Below are positions 3,556 to 48,188 of a stretch of DNA of 64,000 nucleotides, piece by piece. Position numbers and translations under genes: made by a program. The DNA is from Chlorokybus atmophyticus (Eukaryota > Plantae > Mesostigma and Chlorokybus algae), in NCBI GenBank assembly GCA_009103225.1, contig RHPI01003369.1:84911-148910 (forward strand), written 5' to 3'. A model generated the notes under the pieces. It did not search any database, was not told the origin of the DNA, and worked only from the letters and a program-made list of their open reading frames with translations. Every line of letters starts with the position of its first letter. The stretch's first letter is position 1.

Positions 3556-4081
3556 TGTAACAGCACCACCGTCGCCGGTGATGCCCCTTCAATCCTCTAC
3601 CCCAATACCCACACCGCCTATGACAAGCCTTTCAGCGGCGTGGCCGCCACTGAGCAGAGAACTGAAAGTCCCCACATCAGATTGATGTGACCTTTTATAT
3701 CAAGAGTATATCAACTATATAACTCTCGATAATTAACTCACAACTAGATATCGACCCTACAGATAGGGTAGTTAGGAAATCTAGCGTGAGCCAATCACAG
3801 CTCAGATAAGGTACCTATCGATAAGGTACCTATCCAAAGATACCTATCGTAAGGTACCTAACGAGATAGTGATCACATTATATCGAATGTGACACTAAAT
3901 AGGCTTGAATAAGCGGTTCTACACCCATTGGGACTTATTTAAGCTATGATAAAGCATCATAGCCTTTAATAAGCGAGGAACCGTAGAAAAGAGGTATAAA
4001 TAAGCATATTTAAATACTTATTCATACAAAATGTGTTATTCAGGTAGCAATAATACCCCTATTATTATTGCTCCCGTTACA
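3556..4081 (-). repeat. 3' LTR
   Basis: TGTAAC...GTTACA termini; differs from 9461-9986 at two positions by eye (3606 and 3727). Confidence 0.96.
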
Positions 4082-4094
4082 TTCCCCCCCACTT
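4082..4094 (-). promoter_or_regulatory. polypurine tract (PPT)
   Basis: Minus strand AAGTGGGGGGGAA immediately precedes the 3' LTR. Confidence 0.8.
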
Positions 4095-4228
4095 AGGTTT
4101 TCAACGTCCTCGTTGAACTCAAGTTGATCAGGCTTGATTTCGAGTAATTGTAACCAGTGAGATAGCAGGAAATGACAGGGTGGTAATGAAACTGCACTGC
4201 CAGTCTGTCATAAAACCAAGCCCACAGT

Positions 4229-7223
4229 TTATGGGACAGGACATGAATCCCAATAAGCTCGAAGCAACTCGCGGCAGTGCGTAAGATGCCTGTCGGGCTC
4301 CCAACTGTTATGTTCCGGGCCATACCCTTTCCATTTCACCAAATAGCGAGTTGCGCGTCCTCGACCATTTAGCTTATGGTTCAATATAGCTTCCACCTCG
4401 TATTCGAGCTCGCTGTCCACCTCAACTGGCGGTGGTGGAGGCTGTGTTCTACCGTCTGAGCGGTAAGGTTTCAACAAGTTTACATGAAACACGTTGTGTA
4501 TACGCACACTTGGGGGCAATTGCAGTCGATAAGCGTGCGTACCAACTCTATCAGTGATAGAGAAAGGACCTAACCATCGGGGCAGCAACTTGCGAGCACC
4601 CGTACCTTTGATGGTTATGTTTTTTGCATTCAGCAAAACTTTATCGCCGACATCGAAAGTGGCCATTTTTCGATGTGTATCAGCATAAGCTTTTTGCCTG
4701 TCCTGTGCTTCTGACAGACACAGCTTGGCTCGAGCCAAATTTTCTTGCATATTAGTGGCAAATTCCTTTGCCGCTGGCACAGTCAGGGCATTGCGAGGTA
4801 CACGCAATGACGCTGGTGTGTTTGGGCGAATCCCATAATTCAAGAAAAATGGGGTTTCCTTTACACTTTCTTGCCACGCGTTGTTCACAGCGAACTCTGC
4901 CATTGGCAAGTACCTGTCCCAATCAGCATGATTAGGAGCCACATAGTGGCGAAGCATTTCTTCCAGTATTTGATTTGCTCGCTCAGTTTGACCGTCCGTT
5001 TGCGGGTGGAAAGCAGTCGACATGCTTTGTTTTACTCCCAACAATTCACAGACTTCTCGCCAAAACTTGGAGACAAAACGAGGATCACGATCTGTGACAA
5101 GTTCACGCGGTATACCGTGAACGCGAAAGACCGTGGACACAAATAAGTGTGCCAAGTCCCGTGCACTTACAGTTGTGCAACACGGGGCAAAATGCACCAT
5201 TTTAGTCAAACGGTCGACAAAAACCACAATAGCAGTGTATTTAGCTGCTGTTTCAGGTAGGTCAGTAATCAAATCCATACTGACACTATCCCACTTTTGT
5301 TCTGGAATTGCCAATGGTTTAAGCAATCCCGCTTGTTTTTGTCGTAGTGGCTTATTACGTTGACACACGTCACATGTGCGAACATATTGATCCACGTCAG
5401 CTGACATTGACGGCCACCAGTATAACTGTTGCGCAGATTTGAGTGTTTTGTGTTTCCCCAAATGCCCAGCATACGGCGGGTCATGCACTGAATGTAAGCA
5501 TTGCTTACGCAAGTCGCCCGAGTTGGGAATTGCCAACTGCTCCCCTTTATACCACAGATTGCTAACAGCAGTAAGCTGTTGCAAGTTGGTTTGACTGCTA
5601 AACCAATCATCTGAGTTATAACCTGTGGACACTTCTTTTAAGAAAGGATCTTCAGGCTGTTGTACATTACGCGTACTTCGAGAGCGCGTAAGTGCCAAAA
5701 GAGCAGGGCTGCGACTTAGTGGATCCGCCACATTGGTGCGACCCGGACGGTATTGCCAAGTGAAAGTGAAACGAGAAATGAATTCATTCCACCTAGCTTG
5801 CCGCCTCGACAGATTTTGTTGCGTATGAAAGAATGTGAGCGGGTTGTGATCAGTAATCACTGAAAACTCCACCCCTTCCAAGTAGCAACGCCATGTGCGC
5901 AGCGCGTGCACCACCCCGAGCAATTCCTGCTCAGTGGTTGTGTAATTACGTTCAGCAGGAATGAACTTCTTGCTTTCATATGCACATGGTCTGTCATCTT
6001 GTAGAAGGACTGCCCCACACCCAATGGTGGAAGCATCACTAATCACCACAAAAGGCTTGGTGTGGTCGGGGAAGGCTAACACAGGGGCTTGTGTCAATGC
6101 ATCTTTAATGCGTGTAAAAGCAACCTCGTGTGCCTCCGTCCACACAAATTTAACATCTTTTCTTAGTAAAGATGTTAAAGGGTTTGCCATGCCAGAATAT
6201 GCTCGCATGAACTTGCGGAAATAATTGGCTAGCCCCAAGAAAGCACGTAACTGATGTACATCCTTGGGTGGTGGCCAATTTTTTACCGCACACACCTTCT
6301 GAGGATCTGGTTTCAATCCTTCTTTGCCAATCACATGCCATAAAAAGGGTAGTTCATCCTTTGCAAAGTTGCATTTGGACAGGTTGGCATAGAATTTGTG
6401 TTCACGTAATCTAGCTAGAACCAATTCCACATGTTTGTGGTGGTCCTCCCGGGTTTTGCTGAACACAATAATGTCGTCCAGATATACCAGTACAAACTTG
6501 TACAATTCATCAGCAAATACCGCATTCATTGCTGTCTGAAATGTAGCCGGTGCANTTGTTAACCCAAATGGCATTCATTGCTGTCTGAAATGTAGCCGGT
6601 GCATTTGTTAACCCAAATGGTAACACTTTATACTCAAAGTGTCCTAGTGGGGTGCGAAATGCAGTTTTTTGTATATCCGACGGGTGGATTTTGATTTGAT
6701 GATAACCACTGGTCAAATCCAGCGTGCTGAACACTGTTGCACCTGACAGCTTATCAAACAAATCATCAATCCGAGGCAAAGGGTATCTGTTTTTCACAGT
6801 GACCTTGTTCAACGCACGGTAATCAATACACATGCGTAGCTTGCCATTCTTTTTGGGCACAAACAAAATTGGTGCACCAAAAGGAGATATGCTCTTTGTT
6901 ATTAAACCTTTGTCCAATAACTCTTTGAGCTGTTTTTCCATCTCCGCGTGTTCTAAGGGACTTAGCCTGTATATAGGCCGCCAAGGTGGCTTTGCCCCCT
7001 CTTCTAACGGAATGGTATGATGTATGTTTCGATCGGGAGGCAACTCTGGGAGTTCATCCTGAAATACATCTGCGTATTGTTCCGTAAGTGACTGCACCAC
7101 AGGGTCACTGATAGCCTGTTCAGCAGGTGTTTCCACCTGTCGTAAGTGCAGTAAGTATACTTCCTCACGTTTACGCATGCAACGTTTCAATTGCATAGCA
7201 GAGAGGAGCGGAACATTATCGCG
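4229..7223 (-). CDS. pol: retrotransposon Pol (RT, RNase H, integrase with GPY/F motif, chromodomain); N-terminal part lies in the N gap
   Basis: [49 protein letters not shown], chromodomain [10 protein letters not shown]...[17 protein letters not shown]. The break at 6522-6619 is a 49-bp tandem duplicate containing an N, probably an assembly artefact. Confidence 0.93.
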
Positions 7224-33801: not shown

Positions 33802-34304
33802 AATTGGTCGTGAGCTTGTTTCTGGACAAGTTGCATTGCCAGGTTGTGTACATAAATCCAAGACTATTCTACACATGCATTCACTGCCTTGCATGAATTC
33901 AACATTTTGGTAGTGTATATAAGGGGTATGGTACGGTGGCAGCATGCATGGTGTTGCCAATGGCATCTATTTTGCCACATGTAGTAGCGGAGCCTTTATA
34001 TACACTGGCAAGTAGCTTGTATACATCTGTGCGTGTCAAGCAAGCACAGCAAAAAACAGAACGATAAAAGTAATGCTGCTAATTACAATAAGTATGAACT
34101 GCACGCATGACCATGATGCTGCTGAGCTTCTACGGTTGTTGTTGTAATGCTGTAATAGTTATTTGCGGATTGGGGCTGCTGAGGTAAAGGTGTTGTTCTC
34201 ATGATGGCGTTTGGTGACATGACCAATTGTCATATCACTCACATACTATTCTATCGTGGTAGTCAGTGTGTTGGTGTTTTATATATATATATATATATAT
34301 ATAT

Positions 34305-34982
34305 NNNNNNNNNNNNNNNNNNNNNNNNNNNNNNNNNNNNNNNNNNNNNNNNNNNNNNNNNNNNNNNNNNNNNNNNNNNNNNNNNNNNNNNNNNNNNNNN
34401 NNNNNNNNNNNNNNNNNNNNNNNNNNNNNNNNNNNNNNNNNNNNNNNNNNNNNNNNNNNNNNNNNNNNNNNNNNNNNNNNNNNNNNNNNNNNNNNNNNNN
34501 NNNNNNNNNNNNNNNNNNNNNNNNNNNNNNNNNNNNNNNNNNNNNNNNNNNNNNNNNNNNNNNNNNNNNNNNNNNNNNNNNNNNNNNNNNNNNNNNNNNN
34601 NNNNNNNNNNNNNNNNNNNNNNNNNNNNNNNNNNNNNNNNNNNNNNNNNNNNNNNNNNNNNNNNNNNNNNNNNNNNNNNNNNNNNNNNNNNNNNNNNNNN
34701 NNNNNNNNNNNNNNNNNNNNNNNNNNNNNNNNNNNNNNNNNNNNNNNNNNNNNNNNNNNNNNNNNNNNNNNNNNNNNNNNNNNNNNNNNNNNNNNNNNNN
34801 NNNNNNNNNNNNNNNNNNNNNNNNNNNNNNNNNNNNNNNNNNNNNNNNNNNNNNNNNNNNNNNNNNNNNNNNNNNNNNNNNNNNNNNNNNNNNNNNNNNN
34901 NNNNNNNNNNNNNNNNNNNNNNNNNNNNNNNNNNNNNNNNNNNNNNNNNNNNNNNNNNNNNNNNNNNNNNNNNNNNNNNNNN
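34305..34982. other. assembly gap
   Basis: N run between a (TA)n tract and a pogo-like end. Confidence 1.
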
Positions 34983-35129
34983 CCCGTATTAGTGTACCCC
35001 CTTACGGGGGGGGCTTTGTTTAAAACCCCCCTTCTACGGGCATGATATGCCTCGATTAAAATACCCTTCCTCCATATTGAGGTGGGGGGCTTTGAGTAAT
35101 GGGGGGGGGCTCAAACCGGGTAAATACGG
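34983..35129. mobile_element. right end of a second pogo-like element or MITE; remainder in the N gap
   Basis: G-run followed by CTCAAACCGGGTAAATACGG|TA at ~35101-35131, with the same terminal GGGTAAATACGG and similar C/G-run subterminal palindromes as the 2016-11253 element. Confidence 0.65.
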
Positions 35130-38680: not shown

Positions 38681-39885
38681 GGGCAGTAGTGGATGCGGCA
38701 AGTTTAAATTTGTGCGCAACGATTGCGGAACGGTGTCACTAGACAATTACATCGCTGGCGTGAAAGATACTCCGCTGAGGCGAACGCGTGCTCATGAACA
38801 CGCCGCCGACAACTTGCGTACCTTGTCTTCCATTGGTTTCTCCCGTTAAACCACTCACGTTGCAACAACAACAACAACAAGGCAATACATGTTTCAGTTT
38901 TGGATGTTGACAATTGCAGCACGTGTCGTCGGTTCTACAACGCGACACAAATATTACCTCATGTACTTGGCTCATATCTCTCGAATAAATGTATATGCTG
39001 TGTGCACAAGCCACACATGGAGCCACGACGCGCAGGGAGCATCCATGCATGCCGTACATGCATGCGTACTGACCCAAACCCTAAGACCGAAGTCGATTGT
39101 ACGATGGTGGACGGGCGGGAGGTGGTGGCGGGGATGTGGGCGGAGGAGGGGGAGTCCGTTGGGTCTGCAGCTGCTAACATTGCTGCAAGGATTGAGTGAT
39201 AACCAGCGGCCGTGTTGTAGGTAACTCGGTCTGCATGCATGCATGCATGACTAACAGGGTGGGGTAGTTAGTTAGTTGGTGAAGAGTAAATGGTTGTGCC
39301 CGGTGGTGGTCGGCTTGAGGAATGTGAAGTGTTGATGCATGTGAATGTTGAACATGTAAAATGTTTGTAAAGCATTGTTGCCATGTCAACGAGTGTCTTA
39401 GATCTTTACACACTTGCTTGCTACTTGTCCATATCAATGCAAAGGGTCATATGCTCTTTTTGCCGTTTTCCCGTTTGCATTGCTTCAGGCGGTTTGGTGA
39501 TTGTGAGAAGCGACGCACAAGACCTGCCAAGCAGTGGAACCATACACATCACGTTTACTACAACACAAGTGTACAAAAGGGGTGTGCTACTATGCCTGTG
39601 TTTATGTCTGCAACACATGCTGGCACAGCAGCATACCCCTTCCATACACTATAGATATCCCATGCTGTGACACCTTCACAAGCAGCAAACTTCTCAGCAA
39701 CCGCCAACTGCGTTCGACAAACTCAAGGGCAGATAACACAAGCTGCGGCTCACATATAAACAAACAACTAATCAAACCCTTCAGGTTGGCTGATCAAGCA
39801 CAGTGCAGTCTGCTATAGTGAGCTGCATAAAGGGTTGCCATGAAACAATACTAGGCATTACAGTACAAAAAGGCGTCGGAGGCCA

Positions 39886-42800
39886 TCAGCCGCTGATCTC
39901 CTCATAGACAATCGGCTTGCATTCGCTGTCAGGAATGAGATCGCATGGGAAGACATCCCTAGGCTCTGGATACAACAGCTGGGTCTTACCCTGTCATAGT
40001 GACGATATAAGGAAAATGTTAGAGAGCGCCTGCACCACACCCCAACGGATGACAACCCGAGAACAGTAACAGGCAACAGGCAGATGTCCCACCTGCAAAT
40101 AGCGGTTGAGCACTGTGGTTGTTGAGAAGTTGAACCCCTCAACCTTTTGGTTGCGCGTGCGCGAGGCATTCATCTGTTTTCGCACTTTGGAGGCCAAGAT
40201 CTGCGGTTGCCAACACAATGAGGACGTGCAATCAGCCCGCTCATTGATCACTGATGCATGGCTAATGGCACGCACCTTGCCCAGCTCAACTCCCCACTGG
40301 TCAAAGCTGTTGATGCCCCAGATGAACCCTTGCGTGGCAATGCGGTTCTCGTAAATGGACAGCAGCTGGCCGGTGGTGTATGGGTCGAGGGAAGGCAGCA
40401 GCAGGGAATGGGAAGGACGGTTGCCGCTGAAGGTCTTGTGCGGGATGAGGTAGTCGGGCACGCCCTCGGCACGCAACTCATTGGGAGTCTTGCCGTACGC
40501 CAGTGCATCCGCTTGCGCAAAGAAGTTGCACATGAGCTCATCGTGGTTGGACACGACCTCGCCCTTGAGGTACACACTCTGTTGGCTCTTGATAATGCCG
40601 ATAAAGTCACAAGGGACCACGCGACCTTGATGAATGAGCTGATAGAAGGAGTGCTGTCCGTTCGTGCCCGGCTCACCAAAGTCCAACTCTCCAGCGTCAA
40701 ATGGCAACGGCCGACCATCAATGTCGACACCCTTGCCATTGCTTTCCATGCTCACCTGCCAACATACACAACTCAACACATTCTGCTGTGGTCAACACCA
40801 CAAACCAACAAGCAAAGCGGACAGTCTTTCCGACATTCTACATTGGAAAGACTGCACCATTAATGGTAAAACAAAAATGACCACAATGCAAGCCTACCTG
40901 CTGGATGTGGGATGGCAGCTTTGCGAGTGCTTGGCAGTAGGGAAGGATGGCGCTGGCCGGGCAACCCAGGAACGAGGTGTTCCAGACGCTCAACAGGCCG
41001 AGCAGCACCGGGATGTTCTGTTCAAACGGGGCCGTGCGGAAGTGCGTGTCGATGCTCCACGCTCCCTCCAAGAAGCGGAGCATGTTGTCAAAACCGTACT
41101 GCAGCGACAGAGGAAGCATGCCCACGGCACTGCAAACTGCCATCCAACAGAAGTCAGCATGCAACTCTGCCCCGCGCGCGTGCATGCAAGTGCTCAACGC
41201 ATTTACTCACCACTGTAGCGACCGCCAACCCAGTCCCAGAATGCAAAGGCGTTCTGAGGGTCAATGCCAAACTCCTTGACAAGCTTGAGGTTGGTGCTGA
41301 CTGCGACCATGTGCTTGGACACGGAGTCCGGGCCAAGGGCGGAGACGATCCACTGGCGCACCGTGCGAGCGTTCAGCATGGTCTCGGCCGTGGTGAACGT
41401 CTTGGACACAACGACCACAAGCGTGGTCTCTTGCTCTAGTCCGTTCAGCTCCCGCGCCACATCGATTGGGTCCACATTGGACAGGAAGCGCAGCTTGCGT
41501 CCGGAAGCATCCAAGGCAGTCCCGGGCTCTGCGCACAACAACATAGCCAATCAAACAACTCCTTGCGCGACTCTTTCACTTTGTCGCTTGATCCATGCAC
41601 ACCATGCACACACACACTATCTGACCAGTGCGAAGAGCCGTATGCACGAAGAGAGGTCCAAGGTAGGAGCCTCCAATACCAATGGCCACCACATCCTTGA
41701 GTGGCTTGCCAGTTGCACCCACCCATTCACCGCTGCGAACTCTCTCGCTGAAATCCTTGATCTTGTCAAGCACTTCCCACACGTCCGGCACAACATTCTT
41801 GCCATCGGCGGTGATAACCTGACAATAGCAAGTGCACAACACAATGTACAACGGTAAGTTCAAGCAATGCGCATGTGTTCACTACGAGCGGGTTTCATGG
41901 TTGCGCACCTCATCGCGGGGTGCGCGCAGGGCAACATGCAGGACAGCGCGGTCCTCAGTCTTGTTGATGTGCTCACCGGCGAACATGGCATCAATCTTCT
42001 TCTTCAGCTCCGCTTCTTTGGCCAGGTTCAGAAGCAGCTGCATTGTCTCCTTCGTTGCGCGTTGGCGGGTAAAGTCAAGGAACACATCGTCGAACTCTCT
42101 ATACCAAAACCCCTTTAGCATCAAGCACAAAAAGTCAAGCTGAGCAAGATTTCAGTGAGACATGCACTTGCTTACGTCATCATCTCCTTGCATCTGCTGA
42201 CATCGCTGAGCAGGTCACGCAGATGAGTATCTTCAATGTCCTTGACGTGGTCCTGCACACCAGCGCGTTCACATAAACTCAATCGACATTTAGCATTCTC
42301 CGTTGCTTACCACTTCCACTTGGCTTCCACAAGAAACACACGATTGTTTGCTGATTCCAGCTATGGTCTCACCTGCAGCGCTTGCCATGCAGGTGACTCG
42401 CTGATCATTTTGCCTGCTTTGACGGACAGCGACAACGCCTGCAATACACAAAGACATCATGCATTGCGCAAAGCATGCATGCGGCAAACGCCATCAGATA
42501 TTGCTGACATGACAACGCTCAGCGCTGAGATGTGATCGCCTTACCGAGGCAGAAACCTGAAGGAGTTGTGTCTTCCTCTGCACTGACTGCCTCCTGTAAC
42601 ACATGCATGCCATATTCAGACACACTCCTCACACACATTGTGCATTCACACTGCCTGCTTTTGAACTTTGACATGCGTATTCATGTTAGCATACTCATAT
42701 TCAACCAAGAAGAATACAAGCACGGGATCCATGCTGCGTCGCTGTGCGCACGGTGCATTGTGCACACTTGCAAGACTTCAGTATGCATATCCACTGCATT

Positions 42801-43005
42801 GAACCTTGTTTGAGGATAGGTACAGGACAAAAGCAAACATGTACCTAGAGACAGTTAGCGGGCTGCCGGCGAGGAAGGCGGGCCTGAAGGCTGGAGCAGC
42901 GCTGCTGCCCTTAGCGGTGCTGTTGGTAGCAACGGCCTGAACAGGGGAGAGCCGCTGATGTGTGAACGCTTGCACCCCAACAGCCCTTACGGCCGCCCCT
43001 GACAT
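39886..43005 (-). CDS. PGI: glucose-6-phosphate isomerase, plant cytosolic (PgiC) type with N-terminal transit-peptide-like extension; 11 exons, 661 aa
   Basis: Exons 43005-42845, 42593-42545, 42438-42373, 42252-42176, 42098-41909, 41818-41626, 41528-41211, 41136-40898, 40755-40276, 40200-40093, 39990-39886 (1986 nt, in frame). Motifs [64 protein letters not shown]. Confidence 0.95.
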
Positions 43006-43659
43006 TATACGCCCAACCCCAAGCTGGACCGTGCCAACCCTGCCGCCCACGCCGTCCACCTCACCAGCGACGCCGACAGCTGGCAGGCTGCAGATCCGCT
43101 CAAACCCAAACCGCGGTTTGAACTACAGCTCAAAACACTCAAAAGCAACACGCTCAACCTGGCGTATGGGTCAAAGCTGACTGCTTTGCCAGAAGACTGC
43201 TCGTGAAGTAACCGCAAAACCAATTGATCATGGTTCGATAGCGGTCAATGTGACTGAGGTGGAATCTCTGGTCACACTTCGCGGGAAGAGATAAGGGGTT
43301 GAGAAGAATGCCCGGGCGCGGCTTGCCTGCTGATTACTGCAGCGCGCGACACCGCTCCAACAGTATGGCCTGCGTCCGCCGACAGAGTCGACGGTCGGTG
43401 CACGCCACAAACCCTGTCGACGCAAACCGTTGGCGCGAGGAGCTCAAAGCCCGCCAAATTTCAATTCAAACTCGTGGCCAGAAACAAGTCTGTGTTGGTA
43501 CTGCTCCCGATTCCACTTCAGTGCCTTTTGGGACCTGCAAGGTCCTGGTTGAAACTTTATGGCGGACAAACATTCAGTTCCAAGGCGCTCAAGTCTGGTC
43601 CCGGGCGGTAATGTCCCTTTTTGGGACTCGTTGGCGCCGCCGCCAAAAAGTTTGAGGCG

Positions 43660-43694
43660 AAACCCTAAAAGGTTCATGAGAGGTTAGCGCGAAA
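43660..43694. promoter_or_regulatory. telo-box and E2F site in the divergent PGI/RNR1 promoter
   Basis: AAACCCTAA at 43660-43668; GCGCGAAA (TTTCGCGC on the minus strand) at 43687-43694. E2F control of plant RNR genes is established. Confidence 0.55.
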
Positions 43695-44220
43695 AGTGCA
43701 ATTGATGATGCACGCTGCAGAGTGGTAGGTGAAAGCGCAGGCGGGCATTTATTTGCCCCTGAAGAAATTTGAGCAAATTTTGAAGTAGATAACAGCGCAT
43801 GACAGCCCAGAGACGTTAACTAGACGGCGGCGGCGGCGGCAGTGGCGGCAGCGGCGGCGGCTGTGGTGTTGAAGGTGCAGGCGGCGGTGTTAGCGTTTGC
43901 AAGTATAGACTGTTGTTAGGGCTGTCTTGTGGGCTTGCCGGAGCTGTTGAAAGCGTCTCCGCCGTGTGTCCACCCCTCCTTACGGCTAGCCTGGGTGCGT
44001 ACGTGGTTGTGAATGAATTGGGCGTAGGCATGCTTGTGGTTGCGCTCTGCTTGCTCAGCGCTTGTGTGCATGTTTGTGTGTTGCAAGCTGTATTGACAAG
44101 AGGTTTCTGGTGATTTTGGCATTGCTAACATGTGCAATGCACTTTGCAGGACTGCTGTAATTATCGTGCGCACACAGCCAGCGACGCCAAGCTGCACGCA
44201 CACACAGCCAGCTAGCATCC

Positions 44221-47200
44221 ATGTATGTCATAAAGAGAGACGGGCGGCGGGAGGTTGTGCACTTCGACAAGATCACAGCACGCATCAAGAAGCTGTCGTA
44301 TGGCCTCTCGGATGAGTACTGCGAGCCTGTCTTGGTCGCCCAAAAGGTACTTAATGTCACTTGCCGCCTTGCCAATTGCTTCCAGTGGTTGAGTTAAATG
44401 CATTGCTTGTTTGTCGTTCGCTCACCTGTTGCTACTCAGGTTACAGCTGGTGTGTACAAGGGCGTCACAACCACAGAGCTTGATGAGCTTGCTGCAGAGA
44501 CAGCTGCCTCCATGACAGCAAAGCATCCACACTACGCACTAGTAAGCCTGCTTGTATGACAAGACACGCTGCTCATTTGTGTCGTGGAACGCGCTGACTT
44601 ATGCGACTCCTGCTGTGCAGTTGGCTGCGCGCATTGCGGTGTCAAACTTGCACAAGAACACCAAGAAGTCGTTCTCAGAGACGGTCAAGCTCATGTACCA
44701 TCACGTTAACGAGCGTTCAGGCCTCAAGGCTCCCTTGATCGCAGATGACGTGTTTGAGATCATTATGAAGGTGGGCAGAGCACTGCTTACGCTCAGCTGA
44801 ACCACACAGCTGCTTGAACTCAAGTGAACGCATGTTGGGTTGCAAGTGTTCTAACGATCTTCTCTGGTTCATTATCAGAATGCGGAGCGTCTGGACAGCG
44901 AGGTCATCTATGATCGTGACTTTGACTATGACTACTTTGGCTTCAAGACTCTCGAGCGCTCTTACCTGCTGAAGGTGCGCTGCTGGCCTAGTCGTGGGCA
45001 TGTGTGTGCCTTATTGCATTGGAATTCGGAACCAACCGCTTTAATGTTCAGGTGAATGGCAAAGTGGTAGAGAGGCCGCAGCACATGCTCATGCGCGTGT
45101 CTGTCGGCATCCACAAGACAGATGTGGAGGCCGCCGTGCAGACATACCATCTGATGAGCGAGCGATGGTTCACGCACGCTTCTCCCACGCTGTTCAATTC
45201 TGGAACCCCTCGCCCTCAGGTATGCTGACAACTATCTCATCTGAACCCTGCTCACGTGTGGACTTGTGGCAGTGTTGTTCATGTGCTCATGTGTTGATGT
45301 GATGCAGCTGTCAAGCTGCTTCTTGGTGTGCATGCGCAACGACAGCATTGAGGGCATCTATGACACACTGAAGCAGTGCGCGGTGATCAGCAAGTCGGCC
45401 GGTGGCATTGGCTTGTCAATCCACAACATCCGCGCCACGGGATCGTACATCCGCGGCACCAACGGCACGTCCAACGGTATTGTCCCGATGCTGCGCGTCT
45501 TCAATGACACCGCCCGCTATGTCGACCAGGGCGGTGGCAAGCGAAAGGGCGCCTTTGCTATATACTTGGAGCCCTGGCATGCTGACATATTCGACTTCTT
45601 GGAGCTAAGAAAGAACCATGGCAAGGTACGCACACATGCATGCACACATATACGCATACGTGTGCACTCTCACTCGTGCTGAGCATTGGATTACATCTCT
45701 CATGCATTTGCTGAACTCTGTGTGTACTATACTATGCAGGAAGAGCAGCGAGCGCGGGACCTCTTCTATGGCATGTGGATACCCGACCTGTTCATGCGCC
45801 GCGTGGAGCAGAACTCTACGTGGGCGCTGATGTGCCCGAACGAGTGCCCTGGCCTGGCGGACTGCTGGGGTGCAGAGTTTGAGGCGCTGTACCAGAGCTA
45901 CGAGAATGCCGGCAAGGGCAAGCGCGTCATCAAGGCTCAAGAGCTGTGGTTTAAGATCCTCGAGTCACAGGCATGTGTGCTGAGAGTCTGCGCGTTATGT
46001 GCATGGTATATCTAATGGTTGCTGCTGTGCGTCAACGCTGATACATATGTTGTGCTGTGCAGATTGAGACGGGTGTTCCTTACATGCTGTACAAAGACAC
46101 GTGCAACGGCAAGAGCAACCAGCGCAATCTGGGTACAATCAAGTGCTCCAATCTTTGTACAGGTACAGCGCAAAATATCCAGTATATATGTTGATTGCAC
46201 TTGACATGCCATCCGTTGTATTGACCTTGACTTACTATCTGTGTATCCATTGTGCTCATCTGCAGAGATTGTCGAGTACACAGCACCGGATGAAACAGCC
46301 GTCTGCAATCTGGCCAGCTTGGCGTTGCCACGCTTTGTGATGGACTCAAACGCCCTGTCGCAGCCAAAGAAGCTTGTCGGCTCAAGTGGTGCTGCAAACC
46401 GCTTCTTTGACTTCAACAAGCTCGCTGAGGTGCGTTTAGACTGTGGATGTCAATGCGCGTGCATGTTTGATGCAGTGGATAGGTCCGGTCACAGGCGATG
46501 ATTACAACAGAATAGGGACATCTGTATCCGTTATGGATGTGAAGAACAATCGTCCTGGGAATCTCTATGAGCCTGTTCCCACTCTATTGCTGCTTTCTAT
46601 CACATGTATGTAGTGCACACAAGTGGTAGTGTGTGCTTGATTGCTCACAAGTTTTGTGTCACAGGTGACCAAAGTTGTGACCCGCAACCTCAACCGCATC
46701 ATCGATGTCAACTTCTACCCCGCTGAGGAGGCGCGCAACTCCAACATGCGCCACCGCCCTATTGGCATTGGCGTACAGGGCCTAGCCGATGCTTTTATCC
46801 TGCTTGGACTGCCCTTTGACTGTGAGCAGGTACAATTGTTTTCTCTACTCTGGCTTTGAACTTGCAGTCGTGCATGGTCGCAATTGTAACACGGCCTCAT
46901 CCTTGTTGTGATGATGCGCAGGCCCAGGAGCTCAACAGAGACATCTTTGAAACCATTTACCACGCCGCTCTGTCGGCATCATGCGAGTTGGCAGAGGTTG
47001 AAGGGCCATATGAGACATATGCTGGCAGCCCGGTATGTATGATTGTGATATCGTGCAAGGGTTTTCACATTGCGTGCTTGTTGCTTATGCATCTGTCCGT
47101 TGCAGCTCTCGGAAGGCACGCTGCAGTTTGATATGTGGCCAGAGTGCGCACCGCTCTCCGGCCGCTGGGATTGGGCCAAGCTCAGGGCGAAGATTGCAAA

Positions 47201-48188
47201 TACTGGTGTGAGGAACTCGCTGTTGGTCGCACCAATGCCCACCGCTTCAACTTCACAAGTACGCATGTCTGTTTGAGCAACATTTGCCTTTGAGTCGTGG
47301 TGACCCCATGTGAGTTTTTTACTGACCGTTGGTATTGCAGATTCTTGGCAACAATGAGTGCTTTGAGCCCTATACGTCGAACATATACGCGCGGCGCGTG
47401 CTGAGGTATGCGTGGTTTGCTGCGTGATGCTATGTTGAGCACAGAAAACAGTCGTGCTCATTTGGTTTGTCTGCAGTGGCGAGTTCACCGTGGTGAACCA
47501 GCACCTCCTCTCCGACCTCACTGAGTTGAGTCTGTGGGACTCGAGTCTCAAAAACACGCTGATTGCGCACAACGGCAGCGTGCAGCAGCTACCCATCCCT
47601 GATAAACTCAAGGCCATATACAAGTAAGCATGTTGTTTACTGAACATCATCATAGTGTAGTCGTGGTGTGCATGCGATGTGTTCCCAACGGCAGTATGAC
47701 AGGGGTGACTAATCATGTTTGATGTTCAGAACTGTGTGGGAGATAAAGCAGAGGACTCTGGTCGACATGGCGGCGGACCGGGGTGCATTTATTGATCAGT
47801 CGCAGTCGTTCAACGTGCACATGAGCGACCCGAACTATGGGAAGCTTACGTCGTTGCACTTTTACGGCTGGAAGAAGGGCCTCAAGACAGGCATGTACTA
47901 CCTCCGCACGCGCGCAGCTGCCGACGCCATCAAGTTCACTGTCGATGCGTCACAACTCAAGGTAAAAAGCACAACTTGTCTATGTGTGCCAAGGCAGCAG
48001 TCTTGACATGTAATGTGAATGTTCTGTTAACTTGTGTTTGGTGACGTTGGCAGGCGTCTGAGGCATTGGCAGCAAAGCAGGTGCTGCAACAGCAGCAACA
48101 GCACTCAGAAGCCGAGCGCGAGGCGCAGATGGCTGCTATGGTGTGCTCATTGGAAAACAAGGACGCGTGCTTGTCTTGCGGCAGTTAG
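44221..48188 (+). CDS. RNR1: ribonucleoside-diphosphate reductase large subunit (class Ia), 16 exons, 820 aa
   Basis: ATP cone [49 protein letters not shown]-terminal CLSCGS. Exon lengths sum to 2463 nt; one GC-AG intron at 45971. Confidence 0.97.

Follow-up and report, generated by a model that had tools for sequence, protein, structure and literature searches.

A conserved cysteine pair in the C-terminal tail of green algal phosphoglucose isomerases: a candidate redox switch

The phosphoglucose isomerase (PGI) gene of the alga Chlorokybus atmophyticus ends in a 105-nucleotide exon that encodes an acidic tail of 34 residues with two cysteines, C643 and C651. The gene lies in a 64,000-nucleotide stretch of contig RHPI01003369.1 (assembly GCA_009103225.1, positions 84,911 to 148,910 of the forward strand), which was analyzed as a whole and is called the window below; all coordinates are those of the window. 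On balance, the cysteine pair probably forms an intramolecular disulfide that is accessible to thioredoxin and would be switched between light and dark; the PGI concerned would be a stromal enzyme and its tail disordered. The tail is a candidate for an old C-terminal thiol-switch extension on a stromal enzyme. PGI sets the share of fixed carbon that leaves the Calvin cycle for starch, as well as the return of starch-derived glucose-6-phosphate to glycolysis versus the oxidative pentose-phosphate pathway. The parts of the tail that are referred to throughout are as follows.

39886 to 39990, minus strand: terminal exon, encoding residues 628-661 (the 34-residue tail) and the stop codon TGA (39888-39886)
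39943 to 39945, minus strand: codon of the first tail cysteine, Cys643, which ends the invariant block D-V-F-P-C
39931 to 39933, minus strand: codon of Pro647, the loop proline behind the resemblance to CP12, which is not conserved
39919 to 39921, minus strand: codon of Cys651, the second tail cysteine, which gives the spacing C-x7-C

Conservation of the tail and of the cysteine pair

About 300 PGIs were gathered by a HMMER search with exon 9 of the Chlorokybus gene and by word-index searches. The C-terminal extension is kept in more than 100 PGIs of the green lineage. After the last helix of the enzyme (NRYL-x), nearly all green algal PGIs of the eukaryote type have the block GK-x-QL-x-YPEP-x-DVFP, which is also found in some streptophyte PGIs (Selaginella, Closterium and unnamed transcripts). 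A preliminary description of this DNA, made from its letters, had stated that the land-plant enzyme ends shortly after this point, and the land-plant cytosolic PGI does end approximately 16 residues past RYLE.

Both cysteines are present in 50 of 102 distinct tails and neither is present in 46. The two tails with a single cysteine are broken models (one is frameshifted and the other is an intron read-through), leaving no credible singles. The spacing is C-x7-C in 49 of the 50 Cys-type tails, which typically end FPCDLIDSDECRPPTSY(V) at the very C-terminus (typical ending CRPPTSY). Among 37 diverse Cys-type tails, the residues G1, K2, Y7, D12, F14, P15, C16 and C24 are invariant, and this invariance is far beyond chance. 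Conservation of both cysteines and of the loop proline had been named as a check in the preliminary description; the cysteines pass it, whereas the proline is found only in Chlorokybus. Elsewhere the loop consensus is CDLIDSDEC, with D, N, H, A, S or E at the position of Pro647.

The Cys pair is present in Mamiellophyceae (Ostreococcus tauri and Mantoniella), Pyramimonadophyceae (Pyramimonas and Cymbomonas), Picocystis, Chloropicon and Pycnococcus. It is also found in Chlorodendrophyceae (Tetraselmis), in Chlorokybus and in Trebouxiophyceae (Coccomyxa, Elliptochloris, Trebouxia, Symbiochloris, Apatococcus, Chlorella, Micractinium and Auxenochlorella). Short tails free of cysteine are found in Chlorophyceae (Chlamydomonas, Volvox, Haematococcus, Dunaliella, Tetradesmus, Chromochloris and Monoraphidium), in Ulvophyceae (Bryopsis, Ostreobium and Caulerpa), in one clade inside the Mamiellophyceae-like group and in the remaining streptophytes. 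Neither Chlamydomonas nor Arabidopsis, the two main model organisms, has the pair.

A maximum-likelihood tree was built from 98 PGI bodies without the tail, and on it the cysteine state requires only 4 changes, compared with approximately 31 when the labels are shuffled. In the full alignment, C643 and C651 are the only columns that differ in cysteine frequency between the two groups (100% versus 0%), and a search of the PGI body for a cysteine that covaries with the tail pair found none. The conserved pair is gained or lost as a unit. The cysteines never vary in the tails that have them and are only ever lost together. They can thus be regarded as a functional pair, and a disulfide is the simplest and most likely form of it. 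Streptophyte PGIs that have no N-terminal extension, and are presumably cytosolic, also have no Cys pair, which fits a plastid-specific role.

If Chlorokybus and the prasinophytes inherited the tail vertically, it predates the split between chlorophytes and streptophytes. Chlorokybus PGI groups with the chlorophyte enzymes (Shimodaira-Hasegawa-like approximate likelihood ratio test support 95), apart from the other streptophyte sequences. The reason for this grouping may be an ancient divergence of plastid-targeted from cytosolic copies and not the species tree.

Gene model and use of the terminal exon

The PGI gene is encoded on the minus strand (43005..39886) by 11 exons and specifies 661 residues, beginning with the ATG at 43005. 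The model was built by eye and then by script. All ten introns have GT..AG ends, and the product is identical, residue for residue, to a public protein (P0244; EukProt EP00898, jgi/Chlat1 Chrsp4S06282), so the public annotation already has the 105-nucleotide tail exon. Exon 9 matches the PGI domain PF00342 (Pfam; E-value: 3.7e-67). The protein is 67-75% identical to green algal PGIs over about 580 residues (BLASTP) and 69% identical to the land-plant cytosolic PGI; based on these matches, it can be classified as a PGI of the eukaryote/cytosolic type. The gene looks single-copy, and no second tail-like exon was located within the window. The parts of the gene upstream and downstream of the tail are as follows.

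43005 to 42845, 42593 to 42545, 42438 to 42373, 42252 to 42176, 42098 to 41909 and 41818 to 41626, minus strand: exons 1 to 6
41528 to 41211, 41136 to 40898, 40755 to 40276, 40200 to 40093 and 39990 to 39886, minus strand: exons 7 to 11
42373 to 43005, minus strand: region of exons 1 to 3, encoding an N-terminal presequence of approximately 75-80 residues, which is likely a plastid transit peptide, and the first part of the mature enzyme
40093 to 40200, minus strand: penultimate exon, encoding 36 residues with the last helix of the PGI C-terminal arm (residues 616-626 in the AlphaFold2 model) and the end NRYLQ
39991 to 40092, minus strand: last intron, 102 nucleotides, GT..AG, phase 0; an in-frame TGA closely precedes the acceptor
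39858 to 39862, minus strand: TGTAA, which we take to be the usual green algal (chlorophyte) poly(A) signal and which is a candidate for that role here, 24 nucleotides past the stop codon and in agreement with the 3' end implied by the share of 31-mers given below

The last intron has a pyrimidine-rich acceptor and a branch-like site, CTCTAAC, approximately 28 nucleotides upstream of it. The phase 0 junction after NRYLQ, the 105-nucleotide exon that follows it the 34 residues that were assigned to it in the preliminary description and the stop codon after them are all confirmed by translation of the minus strand and by the public gene model. Reading through the intron would instead add an unrelated tail of 33 residues, as seen in the list of open reading frames.

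The protein could in principle stop at or just past RYLQ, with the tail exon being an artefact of gene prediction or one that is rarely used. There is next to no chance of this, given the identical public model and several further lines of evidence. BLASTP alignments to green algal PGIs, including that of O. tauri (P0175), are unbroken across the junction and reach residue 653 of 661. Colinear orthologues are found in metagenome DNA, genome DNA and transcriptomes; the same kind of tail is present in transcriptome-derived sequences of Tetraselmis astigmatica, Pyramimonas, Mantoniella and other entries of the Marine Microbial Eukaryote Transcriptome Sequencing Project. Residues of the tail are invariant among the 37 Cys-type tails, and a retained intron would yield a tail that is not conserved. 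Lastly, as indirect support, the shares of 31-mers of the region 39750-41250 that are present in two runs (sampled words) are 0.63 and 0.61. The share predicted for transcripts spliced with the tail exon is 0.59-0.65, compared with 0.51 without this exon, 0.74 if the last intron is retained and 1.0 for genomic DNA. The observed values thus fit inclusion of the tail exon and not skipping.

Relationship to CP12 and GapB

The preliminary description likened the tail to those of CP12 and GapB. The acidic motif that it gave, F-x-C-x3-P-x3-C-K-x3-Y-E, is present in the Chlorokybus tail as F-P-C-x3-P-x3-C-K-x3-Y-E-E, with seven D/E residues versus three K/R residues. The defining CP12 loop is CxxxPxxxxC, according to a CP12 review (PMC9406205). 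This pattern was verified on PDB chains of Arabidopsis CP12-2 (YCKDNPETNECRTYDN) and of cyanobacterial CP12 (YCDDNPDAAECRIYDD). The Chlorokybus loop, C-x3-P-x3-C, is one residue shorter and so does not have it.

Profile and structure database searches gave no sign of a relationship. The Pfam CP12 family (PF02672) has no match at E ≤ 10 to the Chlorokybus tail or to 37 orthologous tails. A PDB search with the Chlorokybus tail, or with a profile of the 37 tails, retrieved no CP12 or GapB chain at E ≤ 10; the sole match of the profile was a chance stretch of 11 residues in corticosteroid-binding globulin (E-value: 1.9). A search of the ESM Atlas with the tail alone gave no match. As a positive control, a CP12-2 peptide of 21 residues retrieved cyanobacterial CP12 (E-values: 1.5e-4 to 0.013), the GapB extension (E-value: approximately 0.002) and CBS-CP12 (E-value: 0.14), and the same tool therefore does link CP12, GapB and CBS-CP12.

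Were the tail a CP12-derived module, it would dock on chloroplast GAPDH when oxidized and so tie PGI to GAPDH, CP12 and PRK. Several features recall such a module, namely the aromatic residue before the first cysteine, the acidic loop, the sequence E-C-[KR] and the Tyr near an acidic C-terminus, and the tail of an uncultured marine relative (P0146) likewise ends in C-x3-YEESDDE. In a Smith-Waterman comparison of the Chlorokybus tail with the cyanobacterial CP12 C-terminus, only 12 of 5000 shuffles scored better. The corresponding comparisons of Chlorokybus with Arabidopsis CP12-2, and of the chlorophyte consensus with either CP12, are not significant. Kinship with CP12 was rejected because no profile or PDB match was found, the spacing is C-x7-C and not C-x8-C, and the proline is found only in Chlorokybus; a module of this origin is accordingly very improbable. 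The cysteine pair of the preliminary description does stand as a redox candidate, but the likeness to CP12 and GapB that it claimed is not upheld as a relationship. The resemblance, judged from these sequences, is best read as convergence that is strongest in Chlorokybus. Such resemblance without common descent would matter for motif-based searches for thioredoxin targets.

Predicted structure and targeting

In the AlphaFold2 model of the Chlorokybus protein (124 sequences), the PGI core has predicted local distance difference test (pLDDT) values above 90, residues 1-75 are below 50 and the tail is at 39-54. The tail of the O. tauri protein (54 sequences) is at 47-55, in a model that is poor overall (mean pLDDT 72.6) and adds little. 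These values weakly suggest that the tail is intrinsically disordered. The N-terminal 83 residues of the Chlorokybus protein contain no D/E, 33 S/T/A and 10 R/K. The preliminary description had noted a transit peptide, and the N-terminus does resemble one: the acid-free extension of approximately 75 residues, predicted to be disordered, is likely a plastid transit peptide.

Tails that have lost the cysteines still conserve the first half of the C-terminal extension, which must therefore have a role of its own. In plant PGI, the last helix contacts the partner subunit (PMC9436075). By analogy, the first half of the extension is perhaps a strap that lies on the partner subunit.

This role of the tail that is independent of cysteine also speaks for a different explanation of the Cys pair, in which it would be a metal site, which might link both tails of the dimer, or a constitutive structural feature of a strap that stabilizes the dimer. 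All-or-none conservation is compatible with a metal site as well as with a disulfide, and a His is located beside the second cysteine or within the loop of some tails (DADHC, DSEHC and LIHSEEC). However, two ligands per chain would make a poor site, and conservation does not extend to the flanking His. The loop is also strongly acidic and the tail is predicted to be disordered, neither of which favors this explanation, and thioredoxin would have access to a surface disulfide on a disordered tail in the stroma. We consider this explanation unlikely, although it is a good deal more credible than descent from CP12.

Proposed model for the redox switch

The proposed model for the tail of the algal enzyme is as follows. 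A disulfide between C643 and C651 would close an acidic loop of nine residues on an otherwise disordered tail. Darkness would leave the pair oxidized, and in the light stromal thioredoxin would reduce it. Algal plastid PGI would thereby become redox-sensitive at the branch point of the Calvin cycle, starch and the oxidative pentose-phosphate pathway. We infer the plastid location, the formation of the disulfide and its reduction by thioredoxin.

The effect on the enzyme could take either of two forms. The acidic loop may dock on the enzyme and gate the kinetics of PGI, by analogy with the tails of GapB and Rubisco activase alpha; this is attractive but doubtful. Alternatively, binding of a partner or stability could be changed with catalysis untouched, as it is in Arabidopsis PGI1.

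The following points weigh against the model. Arabidopsis plastid PGI1 undergoes a redox change that leaves its activity unchanged, according to Nishide, Fujii and Yoshida (Biochem J 2025; PMC12751066). In Chlorophyceae (Chlamydomonas, Volvox and Dunaliella) and Ulvophyceae, the Cys pair has been lost while the N-terminal extension has been kept, so a switch would be dispensable in the plastid enzymes of these groups. Plastid targeting of the Chlorokybus enzyme is deduced from composition alone. Finally, the AlphaFold2 prediction was run on the monomer, and placement of the tail in the dimer is beyond its reach.

A broader form of the model would trace a light/dark switch of this type, which would alter either partner binding or the kinetics of PGI, back to the ancestor shared by green algae and plants. 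This extension is tentative and somewhat unlikely. An ancestral switch would have gone unnoticed because it was lost in Chlorophyceae, including Chlamydomonas, and because seed plants use a plastid PGI of the cyanobacterial type, which would have gained a C-terminal disulfide of its own independently.

The full-text literature that was searched, with incomplete coverage, contained no description of the algal PGI tail or of its cysteines. Plastid PGI has been known as a thioredoxin target since December 2025, but neither the protein concerned nor its Cys pair is the one described here. If the model is correct, chloroplasts have placed a thiol switch on PGI twice, on enzymes that are not orthologous. 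The carriers of the algal switch would include Ostreococcus, Micromonas-like picoplankton, Chlorella, Trebouxia, Tetraselmis and Chlorokybus, and these would provide tractable systems in which to study its function.

Other tails and neighboring sequence

A few individual tails have unusual features. In the Parachlorella kessleri model (P0210), a tail segment of 19 residues occurs twice in succession, with the Cys-less sequence TDLIGHHDEG after the first copy and CDLIDSELC after the second. A tandem duplication or a mis-assembly could account for this doubling, as could alternative terminal exons that give redox-sensitive and redox-insensitive isoforms. A similar doubling is present in a Closterium model (P0217), in which both copies are Cys-less.

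The tail that is nearest to that of Chlorokybus belongs to the uncultured marine alga mentioned above (P0146; L001-L003, from Tara Oceans and other metagenome contigs). It has an identical block of 14 residues, followed by C-x8-C and the acidic end YEESDDE. The P0146 sequence contains an in-frame retained intron after GKT, which puts the intron position three codons away from that of Chlorokybus. On a GC-rich algal contig of JGI metagenome 3300003971 (L004), which encodes a PGI with introns, no Cys-type tail exon was found after NRYLESGEQ in the region 4000-5000. A possible degenerate, Cys-less remnant, ARDSFPAGMIKPSKAA* (RDSFPAGMI), is present there in another frame.

The RPPTSY[V/A/L]-COOH ending (P0175, P0163 and P0178) survives in some Cys-less clades as KPPTSYN or RPTSYV and is not present in Chlorokybus. 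We presume that it resembles the C-terminal motifs known as PDZ class I or 14-3-3 mode III, and it is a candidate for a motif of this kind.

The large subunit of ribonucleotide reductase is encoded by a multi-exon gene on the plus strand at 44221-48000, which starts approximately 1.2 kb upstream of the PGI ATG. The two genes are divergent and may share the promoter region 43006-44220. An assembly gap (a run of N) is located at approximately 34250-34990 and follows a TA-type microsatellite with the translation YIYIYI; together these explain the apparent GC content of 27% in the 34-36 kb bin.

Comparison with known systems

The GapB extension is a thioredoxin-controlled autoinhibitory tail of chloroplast GAPDH. 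Like the CP12 C-terminus and the GapB extension, the PGI tail is a disordered, acidic, two-cysteine C-terminal loop on a stromal enzyme of carbon metabolism, if the predictions of disorder and location hold, and it shares with them an aromatic residue before the first cysteine, a basic residue after the second and a Tyr near the C-terminus. It differs in that there is no detectable sequence relationship, the loop is one residue shorter and it has no conserved proline. In addition, the usual ending is CRPPTSY in the PGI tail, versus C-R-x-Y-D-D/N in CP12 and GapB, and the enzyme that carries the tail is PGI and not GAPDH.

The C-terminal extension of Rubisco activase alpha and the C-terminal Cys pair of phosphoribulokinase also confer sensitivity to thioredoxin. 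These resemble the PGI tail in being C-terminal Cys pairs that are present in some lineages or isoforms only, while their sequences and the enzymes themselves are unrelated to it.

Chlamydomonas ADK3 is a further example of an enzyme outside the Calvin cycle proper that has a two-cysteine C-terminal tail. According to the CP12 review (PMC9406205, citing Thieulin-Pardo 2016), the ADK3 tail binds GAPDH and has the motif CxxxPxxxxC, which is missing from the PGI tail. The carriers of CP12-like tails named in the same review are GapB, ADK3 and argininosuccinate lyase, and PGI is not among them (PMC9406205).

The closest functional parallel is Arabidopsis plastid PGI1. Based on the study cited above (PMC12751066), this enzyme forms a C548-C606 disulfide near its C-terminus in vivo, which is reduced by Trx-m/f in the light. 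Both enzymes are PGIs, PGI1 being plastid and the algal enzyme probably so, both have a C-terminal Cys pair that is redox-active in PGI1 and putatively so in the alga, and both would act at the same metabolic branch point. PGI1 is of the cyanobacterial type and is not orthologous to the algal PGI. Its cysteines are 58 residues apart on a folded surface, whereas those of the algal enzyme are located within a nine-residue loop of the tail. If the algal pair is redox-active, it would be convergent with the PGI1 disulfide.

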